This document shows, piece by piece, positions 1,402 to 19,250 of a stretch of DNA of 64,000 nt. The notes under the pieces were generated by a model, which worked only from the letters and a program-made list of their open reading frames with translations, was not told the origin of the DNA and did not search any database. The stretch lies in the sequence record PV593634.1, one strand, 5' to 3'. Made by a program: the position numbers and the translations under genes. The stretch's first letter is position 1; the number at the start of each line of letters is the position of its first letter.

Positions 1402-3391
1402 CCTCTCTTGCTTGTCCATGCTCCAGTTCACTGAACGTCGAGTGAAAACAGAAGTAGTAGATGATAAAGGCGACACAGTAATTACCGATACATGGATGTT
1501 GGCTCTTTCCTGGTTTAGTTTGGTAGTCCATCGTTATTATAACGAAGAACCTTATCACATCGACGAACTTGCTTTGTTAAATGCCAAAGATGGTTGTCAG
1601 GCATTTATCGATGATGATACGTTGAAGGTTCCAATCGATAACTTCTTAGAACGTCTGATGCCAAAGTATGACGATCCGGTGTTCTATGATTTTATCAAAC
1701 AGCTGATCTTCACATGGCATAACCAGGTTCACAACTATCTCTGTATTAAATCCGAGACAGGTGTGGTATCTGCACGTGCTATGGATGTTGTTCATTGTTA
1801 TCGACATCCTCCAGTAGCTGATCTGAAGAAACGTGTGGCTGAAGGTAAAACCAACTTGGCTGATGCGGCTAAGGAATTCGAAACGATCATGATGACAGAT
1901 CCTGCTTTTGATAAGTCGGTATTCGGTCTATTGTATCGTACTCGTTCGGTTAACCCAACACAGTCGTTCCAGCTGGTGATTGCTCGTGGTGACGTATTCG
2001 ACTTGAACAACGTTATCCTGCCAAACACCGTAATGCCTTCCTATGCTGATGGTATTACCAACCTAGCCGATTCGCTGGGTGAATCCAAAGCAGCAGGGTT
2101 CTCCTTGATCTCTAACGGCTCTGCACTCCAGGACTCCGAATGGTTCCATAAAAAGATCCACAACGTGTCTCAGGTAGTGCAGGGTGTTCGTTATCAAACA
2201 GACTGTGGCTCCACTACGGGCCCGGTGCTGAAGATCATCAGTAAGGAGTTCAAGAAGTCGTTAGCTGGTCGTTGGCGTATTAATGACGATGGAACTACAA
2301 CCCTTCTAACTTATGAAGAATTGAAGAAGATCGAAACTGGTGACATAATCCGTATTCGTGACGTTGCTTGGTGCCATCATGCTGGGCGTGATGGTAAGCC
2401 ATGTTCTATTTGTTTTGGTAAAATGGAATCCGCACTTCCGTATAATCCATATACCCAAAAGTCAGCAGTTCCTGGATTGTTCTATGGTTCTACATTTGCG
2501 GAACCTATTGGACAGTCCATCCTGAAAACCAAACACCGTATCGGCTCCGCAACAGCTGTAGGGTTCAAGGTTAACAGACAGGACGTTGATTATATCACAA
2601 CTGACGAACATGGCGACTACATCTATTTCCATAAAGGTATTCTGAACGAAGAATCCGATCCGTATATCATTCTGGATAAAGAAACCCAGCAGGACTTCTC
2701 CGACTTCCAGTTCATGGATAACATTGAAGATCTTGATGCATCTCGTCTGCGTACTTACGAAGCTATTAAACTGCGCGTTAACATCGTTAACCCAATGTTC
2801 GATAATCGTAAAGCAACTCACTATCCGACAATCGTTACCACGGTAGCATCTCGTGATGCTCGTATGACGAAACCGTTTATCGAGTATCTGTTATCCAAAC
2901 CTATGGAAGAAGAAGGTCGTACCTTTAAGATCAGTCTGAAAGACTTTGACTTCAAAGAACCGGCCTTCGAACTACCGCAGGTAAACGAAGACCTTGATGC
3001 TTATCGTAAACGTGTAGAAACATTCTTGAAGTTCCCGAATATTAACCGTCGTTGGGATGTGAAGGTAACACCTGAGTTACATGGTGAAACTATGATTGCA
3101 TTCTGGAAGGTAGTAGACGAGAAATATAAAGGTGCGAATATCATCATGCATTCTATCTTCCTATGGGCGTGTATGGCAAGAGATCCAGAGAACCTGGACT
3201 TTGGTATTCCTATTGGGGATGAACCTCGTAACTTCATTTCTCTGCACGATGCGGTACTGTCTCGTGGTTTAGGTAACACCTTGTTGTATGGCTGGCAGGG
3301 AAGTGCGTTGTTGGGTAGTCCAATTAACTTCCTGATCAAGAACCGTCAGGGTGGTGCTCTGGAAGCATTCATCCATCCAATCGCTCGTTAA
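1370..3391 (+). CDS. rpoC: Non-virion RNA polymerase beta' subunit, C-terminal part (phiKZ gp74-like)
   Basis: 673 aa; Zn-binding pattern TDCGS...RDVAWC...CSICFG and STFAEPIGQSILKTKH (equivalent to QSIGEPGTQLTMRTFH trigger-loop region); synteny with beta-C and SF2 helicase. Confidence 0.88.
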   Translation: MKKIKLREFANLSCLSMLQFTERRVKTEVVDDKGDTVITDTWMLALSWFSLVVHRYYNEEPYHIDELALLNAKDGCQAFIDDDTLKVPIDNFLERLMPKYDDPVFYDFIKQLIFTWHNQVHNYLCIKSETGVVSARAMDVVHCYRHPPVADLKKRVAEGKTNLADAAKEFETIMMTDPAFDKSVFGLLYRTRSVNPTQSFQLVIARGDVFDLNNVILPNTVMPSYADGITNLADSLGESKAAGFSLISNGSALQDSEWFHKKIHNVSQVVQGVRYQTDCGSTTGPVLKIISKEFKKSLAGRWRINDDGTTTLLTYEELKKIETGDIIRIRDVAWCHHAGRDGKPCSICFGKMESALPYNPYTQKSAVPGLFYGSTFAEPIGQSILKTKHRIGSATAVGFKVNRQDVDYITTDEHGDYIYFHKGILNEESDPYIILDKETQQDFSDFQFMDNIEDLDASRLRTYEAIKLRVNIVNPMFDNRKATHYPTIVTTVASRDARMTKPFIEYLLSKPMEEEGRTFKISLKDFDFKEPAFELPQVNEDLDAYRKRVETFLKFPNINRRWDVKVTPELHGETMIAFWKVVDEKYKGANIIMHSIFLWACMARDPENLDFGIPIGDEPRNFISLHDAVLSRGLGNTLLYGWQGSALLGSPINFLIKNRQGGALEAFIHPIAR

Positions 3392-3426
3392 TAAATGAAA
3401 GGACAAGGATGTCCTAGGAGAAACAA

Positions 3427-3630
3427 ATGGTTAACCGAATTCAAGCTGATGTTAGTGACTCAACAGCTAAAGCGTTTGAAGAGTTCAAGAAAGATCACTG
3501 TATGACAAAGGGCGTGACCATTGATCGTGCCGTTGCATTATACCGTCGTATGTTTTCCGAAGCTCAAGCCGATAATCGTATCATGATTATCGATTCTCTA
3601 GGAAATCAAAAAGAAATCGTATTACTGTAA
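3427..3630 (+). CDS. Ribbon-helix-helix (CopG/Arc-like) small DNA-binding protein
   Basis: 67 aa; N-terminal alternating strand RIQADV, then helix-G-helix (..KKDHCMTKGVTIDRAVALY); strong SD AGGAG. Confidence 0.6.
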   Translation: MVNRIQADVSDSTAKAFEEFKKDHCMTKGVTIDRAVALYRRMFSEAQADNRIMIIDSLGNQKEIVLL

Positions 3631-14934: not shown

Positions 14935-15717
14935 ATGTCTAAATCAGTTCAAGCTAAAGCAAACAAACGTAATGCCCGTGCAAAAGCAAAACGTGCTTCC
15001 GTATCCAAAGGTCGTGCTGCGCCTCAAGCTATCAAACAACGTCAGATGCGTGCACTGATGGGTCAAGGTGCAAAGATCCCTGGGTTTGATGCTGCGCTTG
15101 AATCCGCCGTAATTGATATGAAGAAAGGGAAGGCTGTAGAGTCTGAGTTCAAGAACACAGCTGACATGATCGATGGTATTAAGAAAGCAGTGGGTGAAGT
15201 ATTCAAGCTGTACTGCTACGTAACTCTGGCTGACTATCTGATCAAAGCTAAGGCTATTGAACATGAACTGTCTGTACCGCTGGAAGACATCTCCCGTGTT
15301 CTGATGAACTTCGACAGCCGTATTGGTGTAATCGAATTCATGAACCAGGATCCGACCCCAGAAGACGAAATCGCGATTCAGACCGAAGCGTTTGATATCG
15401 GTACTAACCTGGCTCAGATCTCTGAAGACCTGTACCAAGAAGTTGCACGTCTGGAAACCTTTGGTCCTCTGATGGAAGAAACCATTGGTCGTCTGGCTAA
15501 CGAAGTTCCTGCCGAGGTAACTGACTCTGGCGCTCGTTATACTCAAGCTCTGCAAGCAGTTGCTTACGACTACCTGCACCGTCTGACCCTGGCTGATCAC
15601 GAACAAGCTCAGGCTACTTCTGACGGTACTGAATCAGAGAAAGAGAAAGAAGTAGAGCATCTCGAAGTTCTCGATATGATGTCCCGTGAATCTGCCGAAG
15701 GCGAAATTGCTGAATAA
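14935..15717 (+). CDS. Hypothetical protein with very basic N-terminus and acidic C-terminus
   Basis: ATG 14935 with SD AAGGT (track start 14740 overlaps the opposite gene); strong codon bias. Confidence 0.8.
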   Translation: MSKSVQAKANKRNARAKAKRASVSKGRAAPQAIKQRQMRALMGQGAKIPGFDAALESAVIDMKKGKAVESEFKNTADMIDGIKKAVGEVFKLYCYVTLADYLIKAKAIEHELSVPLEDISRVLMNFDSRIGVIEFMNQDPTPEDEIAIQTEAFDIGTNLAQISEDLYQEVARLETFGPLMEETIGRLANEVPAEVTDSGARYTQALQAVAYDYLHRLTLADHEQAQATSDGTESEKEKEVEHLEVLDMMSRESAEGEIAE

Positions 15718-15750: not shown

Positions 15751-17358
15751 ATGTCTGAAGAAAACAAAGACGTAATGCAGGAGCTTAATAAAGAGGCGGC
15801 AATCGTCGCCCTTACTAATGCTCTTGTAGGACCTGCTCTGGAAGATGATCCGGCACAGCCTCTGTTCCTTGGAACTCTTTCCGAAGAACATAAAGCGATC
15901 TACAAAACATCAGTAACTCTGATGGCGTGGCGTCGCGCAGAACAGGAAGGTAAAGAACGTGACGCTAACGTACTGAAAGATCAGTATGATGCACTGCGTG
16001 AAGAACACTTCCCTGGTGTGGAAAACACCATCTTAACCAACATGTTGGTTAACTACTTCCGTTTCTATTTTAACGGTCTGGATCGTGGTCTGGTTCGTTC
16101 TACAACTAACGACGTAGTGCGTGGTCGTAAAGTTGTTAACACCTTACCTACTAAGTCAGGCGTCCGTATTGGTTTGATTTCCAAGAACACCGCATCAGTT
16201 AAATCTGATATGAGCGTTCGTGACCGTATGCGTCGTAACTTCCTGAAAGCAACGGGTGCACCGGATACCTTTAACGTTATCCTGGCTAACTCCCTGATCT
16301 TCCTGCGTGTCAAGATTCCTACCCCTCTTGACCTGGTACGTTTGATTAACGACATCGTTGTTCAGCTTCGTAACTATGGACAGCGTTTCAACCAATCAAC
16401 TATCCACCTGGAACGTGCTGGTATTAGTCGACTGATTGTTGACTTTATCCTGGACCGTACTTCTTACCATTCGGTTAAAGGTATTGGTGATCCTGCTGAA
16501 CTGAAGAACTTGATCCTGTCTAACGATGTTAACCATCTGGCACAGGGTCTCCTGGCTATCGGTTCACCTAAGGGTGTAACATTCCGCATGAGTTGCCTGG
16601 CTCACAAATGTGGTTGGACTGAAAACCAGGTTATCGATCCTGCTGCGATGCTTCTGTACGTTGAAGAAGATCAACCAGAAGAACGTCGTCAACTACTGTA
16701 TCGTCTGGTTAACGAAGGTCTCAAACTGTCTCCTGAAGATCTGGCTAAAGTTCCGCCGGTATATAAAGGAACGGATGGCGAACCTCTCAATACCAAGATT
16801 GAGTTCCCTCAAGGTGGTGGTCGTTTGATCATTCAAGTTCCTTATATGAATGATTACTTCAACTGCTATGATGACATGGCTGCTCGCATTAACCCTGAGC
16901 TTCGTGAGCTGGCTGTCAAGTTCCCTAATGCTAAGACCCTGGAAGAGAAACGCAAAGAGTTCTATGCTCAGATGCGTGGTCACGAATATCTCCAGTGGTT
17001 CAGTGCTTACGAAATTGACCCAGCTCCTGGTGAAGAAGGCGAGAAAGAAGTCATCTACCGTGATGAAGATCCGAAAGGGTTTGATGAAGGTCTGATGGAT
17101 ATCTTTAACAATGACGAAGAACTCTACATCGAAGCGCTGCAAAAGGTTATTACCATTGCACCTCGTATGACTTACACCTTCGTTGGTATTTGTGAAGATA
17201 CCTGTCCTAAGTGTAAACAGAAATCAGACGGTCCTCTGGCTGAACATCTGCACAACTTCACACCTATCGACCCAGTGATGAATTTTTTCGACCATACCCG
17301 AATGATTATCGACCTCAGAACAGCACAACAGAGTTTACAAGAGGAAGCTCTTTCTTAA
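15751..17358 (+). CDS. Putative tail/baseplate assembly chaperone (G-like; T4 gp26-like Zn-finger type)
   Basis: 535 aa; two Cys pairs (CLAHKC, CPKC); -1 slippery heptamer near the 3' end; function inferred. Confidence 0.55.
   Translation: MSEENKDVMQELNKEAAIVALTNALVGPALEDDPAQPLFLGTLSEEHKAIYKTSVTLMAWRRAEQEGKERDANVLKDQYDALREEHFPGVENTILTNMLVNYFRFYFNGLDRGLVRSTTNDVVRGRKVVNTLPTKSGVRIGLISKNTASVKSDMSVRDRMRRNFLKATGAPDTFNVILANSLIFLRVKIPTPLDLVRLINDIVVQLRNYGQRFNQSTIHLERAGISRLIVDFILDRTSYHSVKGIGDPAELKNLILSNDVNHLAQGLLAIGSPKGVTFRMSCLAHKCGWTENQVIDPAAMLLYVEEDQPEERRQLLYRLVNEGLKLSPEDLAKVPPVYKGTDGEPLNTKIEFPQGGGRLIIQVPYMNDYFNCYDDMAARINPELRELAVKFPNAKTLEEKRKEFYAQMRGHEYLQWFSAYEIDPAPGEEGEKEVIYRDEDPKGFDEGLMDIFNNDEELYIEALQKVITIAPRMTYTFVGICEDTCPKCKQKSDGPLAEHLHNFTPIDPVMNFFDHTRMIIDLRTAQQSLQEEALS
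17283..17289 (+). other. Putative programmed -1 ribosomal frameshift site T TTT TTC
   Basis: In-frame codons AAT TTT TTC give X XXY YYZ; -1 frame is open from 17244 to stop at 17807 (checked codon by codon). Confidence 0.7.
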
Positions 17359-17399
17359 CGGAAGATCATAATCTTAATAAACGCTCTGTTGAGCGAGCT

Positions 17400-17807
17400 A
17401 TGGAAATGTTCATAGCTGAGGCCCAAGAGAAAGACCCATTGAAGATAGCGGTGCTTGAGCGCCGCTTATTCATGATCAAATACGGTTACGTAGGCGATAA
17501 GGAATTACTCACAGGCCAACTGAAGTTCAATACCAATACCAGGGAGTTCTTTCATCCCTGGTCCATTAGGGCCATGGGTAAGACATTCGGGGCCCGTGAA
17601 TATGGCCGCTTCATGCCGATGATAGACTATTTCAACTTCCCAGTGGATCTTATAGAGGATCTCCTCGAAGGCGTTGTGGAAGGTGAACAGGAAGCTATCA
17701 AGGCCAAACAAAAAGCCGCACAACAAGCAGCCGCTGCAGCAGGTGGGAACCAAGATCCACATAAAGCAGCGCTGGCATTGGCTCAACGTGAACAAGGTAA
17801 GAAATAA
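17400..17807 (+). CDS. T-like C-terminal domain of putative chaperone fusion (reachable by -1 frameshift from 17289)
   Basis: -1 frame relative to 15751 gene; no clear SD before ATG 17400; W..M...Y.NFP..L..LL..E pattern recalls gpT/gp51-type domains. Confidence 0.65.
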   Translation: MEMFIAEAQEKDPLKIAVLERRLFMIKYGYVGDKELLTGQLKFNTNTREFFHPWSIRAMGKTFGAREYGRFMPMIDYFNFPVDLIEDLLEGVVEGEQEAIKAKQKAAQQAAAAAGGNQDPHKAALALAQREQGKK

Positions 17808-18349
17808 TGGGAAATCAATATAAACCACCCCAGGTAGAGAAACGCAATAACACCGTTACTCACCAGGTTGAACAGGATAAAGATAATGACAACACTATTG
17901 GTGTTAGTTCCAAATCCTTTATCCGTACTCCAGAAGCGATCTACCAAGAAAACATCAGTACCTTTACTAAGTTCCTGAAAGGTGAAGTGTATGGTGGTTC
18001 CCTTGAAGAACGCCAGAAGTTCCAACTGGACTTCTTCAAATCCATTCCAGCTATTCTTCGTCTGGACCAACATAAGGTTAAAGCTATTCTCGATTTCTTC
18101 ATTATCGAGATTGCTAAGAACCGTGAAACCTACGAGTACTCTAAAGTACTGGCTCCATTGTTCAAACTGGAATCTAAGCTCCCAGGTGAAGATGTAGCTC
18201 GTTATAAACGTTTCATGTTGTTCATTACCATGTTGTCTGACAACGCTCGTAATCGTGATCGTTTCCGTGCTCAGTTCGATACTGTTAGCTTTGCTAACAT
18301 GTGGGATGCTGCTGCTAAAGCGAACATCACTAATTACGTGTTCCGTTGA
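17807..18349 (+). CDS. Conserved hypothetical (possibly virion) protein
   Basis: TAATG coupling; strong codon bias; followed by hairpin. Confidence 0.75.
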   Translation: MGNQYKPPQVEKRNNTVTHQVEQDKDNDNTIGVSSKSFIRTPEAIYQENISTFTKFLKGEVYGGSLEERQKFQLDFFKSIPAILRLDQHKVKAILDFFIIEIAKNRETYEYSKVLAPLFKLESKLPGEDVARYKRFMLFITMLSDNARNRDRFRAQFDTVSFANMWDAAAKANITNYVFR

Positions 18350-18384: not shown

Positions 18385-18421
18385 TGTTATGCAATACACT
18401 ATTAACTTTAAGGAAATTAAA

Positions 18422-19216
18422 ATGTCTTTCTCCGATGTTGAACACGTAATGACCATGATGTCTGGCTGTGAATCCCTCCTTCATGGTGATCCTAAATCGG
18501 CTGACGCTAAATACGCTTTCACTGTACTGAAACTCCATGCCAACGATGCTGGTTATGTAGCCGGTCAAGAAGGTTTTATCGACACCATTAAGAAAGGTGC
18601 TTCTGCAACCGTTGAATGGGTTAAGAAATTGATCCAAGCTATTCGCGATTATCTTAAAGGCGTGTCCCGTGAAGACCGCGATCGTATTAACAATATCGAT
18701 AAGAAACTGAAAGCCCTGGAGAAGGTAGAACAGTATAATGGTGCCGATGCCTTTGATGGTGTCAAGGGAAGTGCTGCTCTTGTCCTTAAGCGCTTGGAAG
18801 GCGTTGCTAAGGATGTAGAAGGTACTGATATTTCTTTCCCTGATGTCGGCGCTCTCGTTAAGAAAATGGAAAATCTAATTGAGTATATGGATGGTGATTC
18901 CACTACCGACTTCCATAAGAAAGTAGACTCGCTATTGGGCGATCTGAACAACGCTATTACTTCAGCTACCTCTTCCCTGGATAAATCCGTTAGCGGTAAA
19001 AAGGGTGAAGACAAGTCACTGACCGATAGTGAGAAGTTCGCATCCACCGCACTGAAGAATCTGGTATCTGCTAAAGAAGCATTCAGTCGCTTCATTGACA
19101 AGTATATCCAAGAAGTAACCAACGTCTATGATCGTTTCAAGAATAAACTTGAAGATCAGAAAGGTCAACATGAATCTCTGACCAAAGAAAAGGCTAGACT
19201 GGAAAAGAAAAACTAA
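18422..19216 (+). CDS. Putative internal head protein, paralog family (copy 3)
   Basis: ATG 18422 with SD AAGGA (track start 18389); MSFSDVEH..GCESL..KLHANDAGYVAGQEGFIDTIKKGA. Confidence 0.75.
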   Translation: MSFSDVEHVMTMMSGCESLLHGDPKSADAKYAFTVLKLHANDAGYVAGQEGFIDTIKKGASATVEWVKKLIQAIRDYLKGVSREDRDRINNIDKKLKALEKVEQYNGADAFDGVKGSAALVLKRLEGVAKDVEGTDISFPDVGALVKKMENLIEYMDGDSTTDFHKKVDSLLGDLNNAITSATSSLDKSVSGKKGEDKSLTDSEKFASTALKNLVSAKEAFSRFIDKYIQEVTNVYDRFKNKLEDQKGQHESLTKEKARLEKKN

Positions 19217-19224
19217 TAACAATT

Positions 19225-19250
19225 CCCTACCTTCCGAAAGGAGGGTAGGG
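19225..19250 (+). terminator. Hairpin terminator
   Basis: CCCTACCTTCC-GAAA-GGAGGGTAGGG-TTTATG. Confidence 0.8.

Follow-up and report, generated by a model that had tools for sequence, protein, structure and literature searches.

A probable −1 recoding site conserved between two hypothetical genes of Shewanella phage SXP01 and phiKZ-related jumbo phages

Introduction

The −1 frameshift of tail assembly chaperone genes, as in gpG/gpGT of phage lambda, is described in the sources cited here as conserved in long-tailed phages (PMC9024508, citing Xu, Hendrix and Duda 2004; PMC13581612). In phage T4, gp26 and gp51 are listed as hub assembly chaperones (PMC3004832 Table 2), and gp51 is needed for assembly and is absent from the final particle (PMC3004832). 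Here we describe a locus to be compared with both systems. It lies in a window of 64,000 nucleotides (nt) that is part of the genome of Shewanella phage SXP01 (PV593634.1, 269,939 bp; the queried region, 15751-17807, is 100% identical to the record, and a position in the window is the position in the record minus 62,000), and it consists of two co-oriented open reading frames (ORFs), ORF1 and ORF2, with a slippery heptamer near the 3' end of ORF1 at which a −1 shift is predicted to join them (Table 1). A first-pass annotation, made from the sequence letters alone, had proposed this shift between two conserved genes annotated as hypothetical proteins, and had taken the pair for a hidden G/GT tail-chaperone system. 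The comparison of 33 genomes presented here strongly supports the proposed shift at the T run.

The same annotation knew of no description of such a system in phiKZ-like phages. This agrees with our full-text literature searches, in which locus-tag spellings were included and which returned no description of ORF1/ORF2 recoding, an absence of evidence only. In a recent paper on the structure of the Goslar virion, the words 'frameshift', 'chaperone' and 'tape measure' are all absent.

A phased slippery heptamer near the end of ORF1

The codons of ORF1 begin at positions congruent to 1 modulo 3, so that AAT TTT TTC occupies positions 17281-17289 and the heptamer T_TTT_TTC (17283-17289) is correctly phased as X_XXY_YYZ. 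Between the TTC of the site and the stop codon of ORF1 there are 22 sense codons. ORF2 is in the −1 frame relative to ORF1, and this frame is free of stops from 17244 to 17807, running from within ORF1 into the ORF that starts at 17400. The 513 codons up to the site together with the 172 codons of the −1 frame give a predicted longer product of 685 amino acids (aa), next to the 535 aa of ORF1 itself. The phase and place of the heptamer, the extent of the open −1 frame and the arithmetic of the two product lengths had all been given correctly in the first-pass annotation.

Within the window this site exceeds chance expectation. The 55 window ORFs contain 34 in-phase X_XXY_YYZ heptamers, after which the −1 frame stays open for a median of 5.5 codons and, in the second longest case, for 31 codons, compared with 172 codons at the ORF1 site. 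This is also the sole T_TTT_TTY heptamer among the window ORFs, and it is made of minor codons: in the window, AAT accounts for 27% of the codons for Asn and TTT for 35% of those for Phe.

Two remarks made earlier about the flanks of the site stand only in part. That ORF2 has no clear Shine-Dalgarno (SD) sequence is weakly supported, since only 3 nt match the SD core before the ATG at 17400, compared with 4-6 nt in 39 of the 55 window ORFs. That the 0-frame uses otherwise rare codons after the site is correct for CGA and AGA (6% and 9% of Arg codons in the window) and incorrect for TTA, which at 17% of Leu codons is not rare; coding constraint in the −1 frame is a better explanation for the presence of these codons.

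Conservation of the heptamer and of the frame relation

Relatives of ORF1 were found by tblastn in 71 phage records, 19 of which were fetched (21-74% protein identity). These 19 include phages of Serratia, Klebsiella, Pseudomonas (OBP, EL and Noxifer), Pantoea, Edwardsiella, Kosakonia, Erwinia, Aeromonas, Vibrio and Photobacterium as well as a second Shewanella phage, and together with SXP01 they form a first set of 20 genomes. Nine distant genomes were collected with one distant family member as query. Eight of these were scorable, namely PhiPA3, the phiKZ-like phage SL2, Goslar, PCH45, an SPN3US-like phage, an Agricanvirus, a Ralstonia phage and a Bacillus jumbo phage. In IMG/VR, a search with the single ORF1 protein returned no close relatives, and a search with an alignment of close relatives returned six loci, four of which were new and were added as uncultured viral genomes. 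The sample thus comprises 33 genomes (20, nine and four), of which 32 are evaluable. The close and distant families are joined by profile comparison: hhalign aligned ORF1 of the SXP01 clade with ORF1 of the distant clade at a probability of 100% (E-value, E, 6e-45), and the two ORF2 sets at a probability of 82% (E 1e-5).

In the ORF1 protein the heptamer corresponds to a conserved Phe-Phe (F-F) motif, located 22 codons before the stop of SXP01 ORF1 and aligned on its counterpart in the hhalign comparison; in distant members it is part of a conserved Cys-Pro-x-Cys ... F-F region. At this motif, 30 of the 32 evaluable genomes have an in-phase T_TTT_TTN, and the remaining two carry G_TTT_TTY at the same motif. 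In the first set it is found in 19 of 20 genomes, 72-81 nt upstream of the ORF1 stop and exactly 75 nt upstream of it in 15, the exception being Noxifer (G_TTT_TTC). In the distant set it is found in seven of the eight scorable genomes, the exception being PhiPA3 (G_TTT_TTT). All eight have a run of six to eight T's (T6-T8) at the motif, from which the −1 frame continues for 154-173 codons to the ORF2 stop, and the four uncultured genomes show the same architecture. Compared with the 172 codons of SXP01, the −1 frame continues past the site for 154-180 codons in the other 30 evaluable genomes.

The frame relation is equally constant. The downstream gene is in the −1 frame in 20/20 genomes of the first set, in 8/8 scorable distant genomes and in 4/4 uncultured ones, and it stays there despite insertions and deletions in the spacer. 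In all 20 first-set genomes the −1 frame is already open before the site is reached, and from the T run onward it has no stops in any genome; in eight of 19 genomes it opens just 12 nt upstream of the heptamer, and in a ninth 9 nt upstream. The first Phe codon of the F-F motif is TTT and the base preceding it is T in 19/19, and neighbouring codons are free at synonymous sites. A conserved heptamer and an overlap open in the −1 frame are what the first-pass annotation had looked to an alignment of orthologues to show; the outcomes that it had named as refuting, orthologues lacking the heptamer or having stops in the −1 overlap, were not observed. On this comparison, chance is untenable as an explanation of the site and of its frame relation, and recoding of some kind very probably takes place at the T run.

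The same frame relation might also arise if the homopolymer had been misread or misassembled, or if a frameshift mutation had recently occurred, in what is truly a single fused ORF. Homopolymers are prone to errors, and one of the 33 records, that of phage RTH11, has a single frame break in ORF1. However, the two-frame arrangement is common to 32 independently sequenced genomes, and none of about 190 homologue clusters is fused, a fused orthologue being one of the outcomes by which the first-pass annotation proposed to refute itself. The 44 close clusters all encode 514-575 aa. A profile of ORF1 relatives retrieved 879 distant clusters among 1.84 billion representatives, and nearly all of the best 150 of the 879, which were inspected, end 11-25 residues past F-F (a few up to about 45), with no long C-terminal extension among these 150. 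In addition, the 0-frame tail after the site is conserved and helical in the structure model, and the PHROG profile match continues to the end of the tail. On this evidence, a shared sequencing error or a pseudogene is excluded for practical purposes, and the probability that the true gene is a single fused ORF is negligible. Relatives of 686-687 aa in the BFVD database were considered as natural in-frame (Rosetta-stone) fusions and rejected, as ORF1 of the SPN3US type is long through an N-terminal extension and ends 21 codons past the site.

In RTH11, a Xanthomonas phage (OQ790161.1, locus positions 1450-3333), the ORF1 orthologue is broken once by a frameshift, and the annotated product of 627 aa has a low-complexity tail unlike that of any relative. 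The break may come from the misreading of a homopolymer or may be genuine. ORF2 of RTH11 is still in the −1 frame relative to the conserved tail of ORF1.

Evidence for dual coding of the overlap

Translation in the −1 frame, begun with the first codon past the site and continued to the end of ORF2, gives polypeptides that are collinear in alignment in 19 genomes. Pro is found at −1 codons 2 and 4 in 19/19, both positions being inside ORF1, and the invariant residues start 3 nt past the heptamer. The 0-frame residues encoded by the same bases vary, yet the C-C dinucleotides are kept, Asp being encoded by GAC in 11/11 cases and Thr by ACC in 14/14; at nearby Thr and Pro codons three or four synonyms are used evenly. 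The alignment thus indicates that protein-level constraint on the −1 frame begins directly after the T run. Because this constraint begins a few bases from the run and stops lie just upstream, the shift would fall within an interval of about 20 nt that contains the run.

The annotated starts of ORF2 scatter: the gap to ORF1 varies between −136 and 323 nt and the annotated length between 45 and 182 aa, in contrast to the uniform distance of 154-180 codons between the site and the stop. The annotated start is in most genomes an internal Met with homologous residues upstream of it and without an ATG there. In the phiKZ-like Pseudomonas phage SL2 (locus positions 3126-3587), the ORF2 homologue is mostly unannotated and a 45-codon end piece alone has been called, apparently as a result of a frame without a start codon.

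These data bear on whether ORF1 and ORF2 are simply two ordinary genes, with ORF2 translated from the ATG at 17400 or 17406, and elsewhere from a non-AUG codon or by termination-reinitiation, and with the heptamer as a by-product of F-F. An ATG does occur at the homologous place in SXP01 and OBP, and F-F is conserved as protein, which forces TTY TTY. The two-gene reading does not, however, account for the T before F-F and the TTT as first Phe codon, which are kept in 19/19 genomes against codon bias. Nor does it explain the Pro-x-Pro that never varies in the −1 frame within ORF1, the lack of an ATG at the corresponding position in most relatives, or the stop-free −1 frame and constant frame position of ORF2 described above. 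As judged from the alignment, reinitiation after the ORF1 stop cannot explain where constraint on the −1 frame starts, and we regard the two-gene alternative as very improbable.

A purine-rich SD-like stretch followed by a T/C-rich stretch (17338-17350) is located about 50 nt past the site, and its conservation is confined to the SXP01 clade. Conserved residues of both frames lie at the same place, and the stretch may reflect no more than dual coding.

Proposed mechanism of recoding

The most likely explanation of the comparative data is a conserved −1 recoding that yields the 535-aa product and a longer isoform. In the proposed model, ORF1 and ORF2 would be one recoded gene. Most ribosomes would reach the ORF1 stop and produce the 535-aa protein, and a minority would move back by one base at T_TTT_TTC, a sequence on which both Phe-tRNAs are able to re-pair, and read 172 more codons in the −1 frame up to the ORF2 stop. 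The last 22 residues, which are predicted to form the C-terminal helix, would thereby be exchanged for a Pro-containing linker and the ORF2 domain, and the two isoforms would be made in a ratio set by the site. Being read by a −1 shift, ORF2 would therefore not need its own start codon. The simplest reading is a slip that depends on nothing but the heptamer.

Several points weigh against this model. The longer isoform is a prediction from sequence comparison, and the Leu that is invariant at −1 codon 23 shares bases with the stop codon of ORF1, so that it is not independent evidence for constraint on the −1 frame. RNAalifold applied to 19 sequences downstream of the site gave 0 pairs and no shared structure, single-sequence folds after the site were no more stable than those of shuffled sequences (z-scores −1.9 to +1.9), Rfam gave no match at the site region, and no SD-like element was seen by eye upstream of it. 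As no stimulatory element was found, the efficiency of the shift may be low. Moreover, the T7-T8 runs of distant phages would also suit slippage by a polymerase.

In this last alternative, a phage-encoded multisubunit RNA polymerase would occasionally add one U at the T6-T8 run. The longer protein would be the same, and the comparative evidence for recoding fits transcriptional slippage as well. A homopolymer is present in every genome, with seven or eight T's in seven of the eight scorable distant genomes and in four of the first set, and the failure to find a stimulatory RNA structure is also in line with a slipping polymerase. However, among the 19 first-set genomes that have a T run, 14 have no more than T6, as do 4/4 uncultured ones, and six T's are short for efficient polymerase slippage during elongation. 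Furthermore, runs of at least six T's preceded by T always contain a correctly phased X_XXY_YYZ (30/32), and the two exceptions keep TTT_TTY with five or six T's, which makes an A-site slip possible and is a poor tract for a polymerase. Because T6 is prevalent and TTT_TTY is retained where the run is shortest, the ribosome is favoured: given recoding, it is quite probably ribosomal, and transcriptional slippage is unlikely. The full reading, in which a ribosomal −1 slip on the heptamer produces two isoforms of an assembly factor, is in our judgement likely.

Protein features and possible function

The AlphaFold (AF2) model of ORF1 has a predicted local distance difference test score (pLDDT) of 82 and a predicted template modelling score (pTM) of 0.82, and the modelled fold is new. 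Four Cys residues (C282, C287, C485 and C488), which reach to about 25 residues before the shift site, are invariant in close and distant alignments. They likely form a metal-binding site that links two distant segments of the protein.

When compared with BFVD by Foldseek, the ORF1 model gave strong matches to uncharacterised jumbo-phage proteins, and matches to models of T4-like baseplate hub assembly proteins, hub subunits or hub assembly chaperones at E 2.5e-4 to 9e-3. Those named 'Baseplate hub assembly protein, bacteriophage T4-like' lie at E 2.5e-4 to 1e-3 with a probability of 1.0 and template modelling (TM) scores of 0.5-0.55 for the target and 0.3 for the query, a comparison of predicted models only. 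At the sequence level, four of 82 distant members match the Pfam family PF12322 (T4_baseplate; best E 1.2e-5) and one of the 82 matches phrog_150 ('baseplate hub'), in both cases below threshold; neither SXP01 ORF1 nor any of 37 close relatives matches PF12322, even at E 10. The resemblance to T4 gp26/gp51-type pairs pointed out in the first-pass annotation thereby receives independent but weak support from Foldseek and PF12322. The G/GT tail-chaperone system proposed there holds as an analogy and no further: ORF1 has 535 aa instead of about 140, it shows no match to tail assembly chaperone families in Pfam, the PDB or fold searches, and its best fold match named 'tail assembly chaperone' in BFVD has an E of 1.5.

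As for existing labels, one Klebsiella phage record names the ORF1 orthologue 'putative baseplate protein'. The label 'putative ZipA-like cell division protein', found in Aeromonas phages ZPAH34 and LAh10 and in Erwinia phage RisingSun, was rejected, as none of the searches supports it.

We propose that ORF1 may be a non-virion baseplate-hub assembly factor and a distant relative of T4 gp26/gp51, and that the extended isoform would bring a second binding domain, as in lambda G/GT. A role of ORF1 in baseplate hub assembly is put forward tentatively, its chances being somewhat short of even. Several observations speak against this functional proposal. Pfam searches with ORF1, ORF2 and their neighbours returned nothing significant, sequence searches of the PDB with three profiles gave no match, and neither did Foldseek when the ORF1 model was compared with PDB structures. 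For ORF2 the model obtained was poor (pLDDT 55), and fold, Pfam and profile searches gave no informative match. The orthologue in phage Churi, gp256, is listed among the non-structural proteins detected 15 min after infection (PMC11849849); its non-structural status is in favour of the proposal, and the time point is early for a tail-assembly factor. Finally, ORF1 is about 2-2.5 times longer than gp26 and gp51, and its functional link to them is weak.

Locus and gene neighbourhood

The features of the locus are listed in Table 1. The hairpin scan found no terminator on the + strand between ORF1 and ORF2, and the gene block runs to the terminator-like hairpin. A gene of similar size to the one 3' of ORF2 is present in 18 of the 19 first-set loci with fetched annotation, Noxifer being the exception. 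The stop of ORF2 and the start of this gene share one base (17805-17809), which suggests translational coupling of ORF2 with the conserved downstream gene. The last ORF of the block (275 aa, 18389-19216) has a weak similarity to internal head proteins of the phiKZ type (PF12699, E 6.9e-5, under the cut-off; phrog_5750).

Table 1. Features of the ORF1/ORF2 locus in the SXP01 window
Feature	Position in window	Strand	Remarks
Upstream co-oriented gene	14935..15717	+	Adjoins ORF1 always in relatives; PhiPA3 gp075 (there noted as similar to phiKZ gp078)
ORF1	15751..17358	+	535 aa; phrog_4585; hypothetical protein in record
Overlap, −1 frame open within ORF1	17244..17358	+	Dual-coding from 17289 on
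Slippery heptamer T_TTT_TTC, proposed −1 shift site	17283..17289	+	X_XXY_YYZ phase of ORF1
−1-frame coding segment	17289..17807	+	172 codons and stop (predicted); first 37 codons are the linker from the site to annotated ORF2
ORF2	17400..17807 (GenBank record: 17406-17807)	+	135 aa; phrog_19747; hypothetical protein in record
Downstream co-oriented gene	17807..18349	+	180 aa; phrog_14374; ATG overlaps ORF2 stop
Terminator-like hairpin	19225..19250	+	First strong one on this strand past the gene block

The neighbours of ORF1 include genes for a virion RNA polymerase beta' subunit and a virion structural protein, several hypothetical genes and, nearby, a DNA polymerase gene, which bears out the earlier remark that the pair is not next to a tape-measure gene. 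None of the neighbouring genes carries an assignment to the baseplate. According to the annotation of PhiPA3, the orthologues of ORF1 are PhiPA3 gp074, phiKZ gp077 and 201phi2-1 gp136, and PhiPA3 gp073 is equated with 201phi2-1 gp135.

Significance of a recoded gene pair

Nucleus-forming jumbo phages are intensively studied, yet both members of a core gene pair of these phages, phiKZ gp077 and the gene beside it, are annotated as hypothetical, and in phiKZ-type records most of the second gene is unannotated because it has no start codon. If true, the recoding would mean that each of these genomes encodes one more, hidden protein isoform and that hundreds of annotations need correcting, and it would provide proteomic and structural studies with a specific species to seek. 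It would also carry the stoichiometry set by frameshifting, known from tail assembly chaperones, over to an unrelated and much larger protein family with links to T4 hub assembly factors. In addition, the T_TTT_TTN sites of these phages form a clean natural collection that seems to function with no stimulatory RNA structure.

A more far-reaching reading is that the recoding is universal and ancient across phiKZ-related jumbo phages (the nucleus-forming ones together with their Bacillus, Ralstonia and Xanthomonas relatives, at least 879 protein clusters), that it makes an essential isoform of phiKZ gp077, and that T4-type hub factors are the functional counterpart of G/GT. We regard this reading as doubtful; in a variant of it, the phage's own multisubunit RNA polymerase would slip on the T run. 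If it were true, the rule of a two-isoform chaperone made at a fixed ratio by frameshifting would extend to a second, unrelated protein family.

Comparison with known systems

Programmed use of a homopolymer-like heptamer is also known from dnaX of bacteria, in which a −1 slip makes two products, tau and gamma, at a set ratio from one gene. This is the point of likeness to ORF1/ORF2. In dnaX the shifted frame stops almost at once, so that the frameshift product is the shorter one, and the site has an SD-like element on its 5' side and a hairpin on its 3' side. In contrast, the predicted shifted product of ORF1/ORF2 is 150 residues longer than the unshifted one, and no flanking SD-like element or hairpin was found.

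With regard to T4, gp26/gp51 (PF12322) is the sole named family touched by the ORF1 superfamily, although SXP01 ORF1 itself differs in having no PF12322 match. PDB searches returned no solved structure of gp26 or gp51, and the fold comparison is thus one of predicted models only. We know of no frameshift in gp26 or gp51.

A further system for comparison is lambda G/GT. ORF1 differs from it in that neither its sequence nor its fold resembles tail assembly chaperone families, in its length (535 aa compared with about 100-150 aa) and in its location, which is beside a virion RNA polymerase subunit gene and near a DNA polymerase gene instead of a tape-measure gene. The likenesses concern the organization of the genes and their products. 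In both systems a −1 shift at a simple slippery heptamer is located near the 3' end of a morphogenesis gene (for ORF1, at the sequence level only), strong RNA structure is apparently not required, and the second ORF has no start of its own. Both would make a major short and a minor C-terminally extended isoform with a common N-terminal body, as predicted here for ORF1/ORF2, and an ORF1 orthologue (Churi gp256) is reported to be non-structural. In both, the arrangement is kept across very divergent phages. ORF1 and ORF2 are not homologues of lambda G/GT, and what the two systems have in common is a likeness of logic, not of descent.

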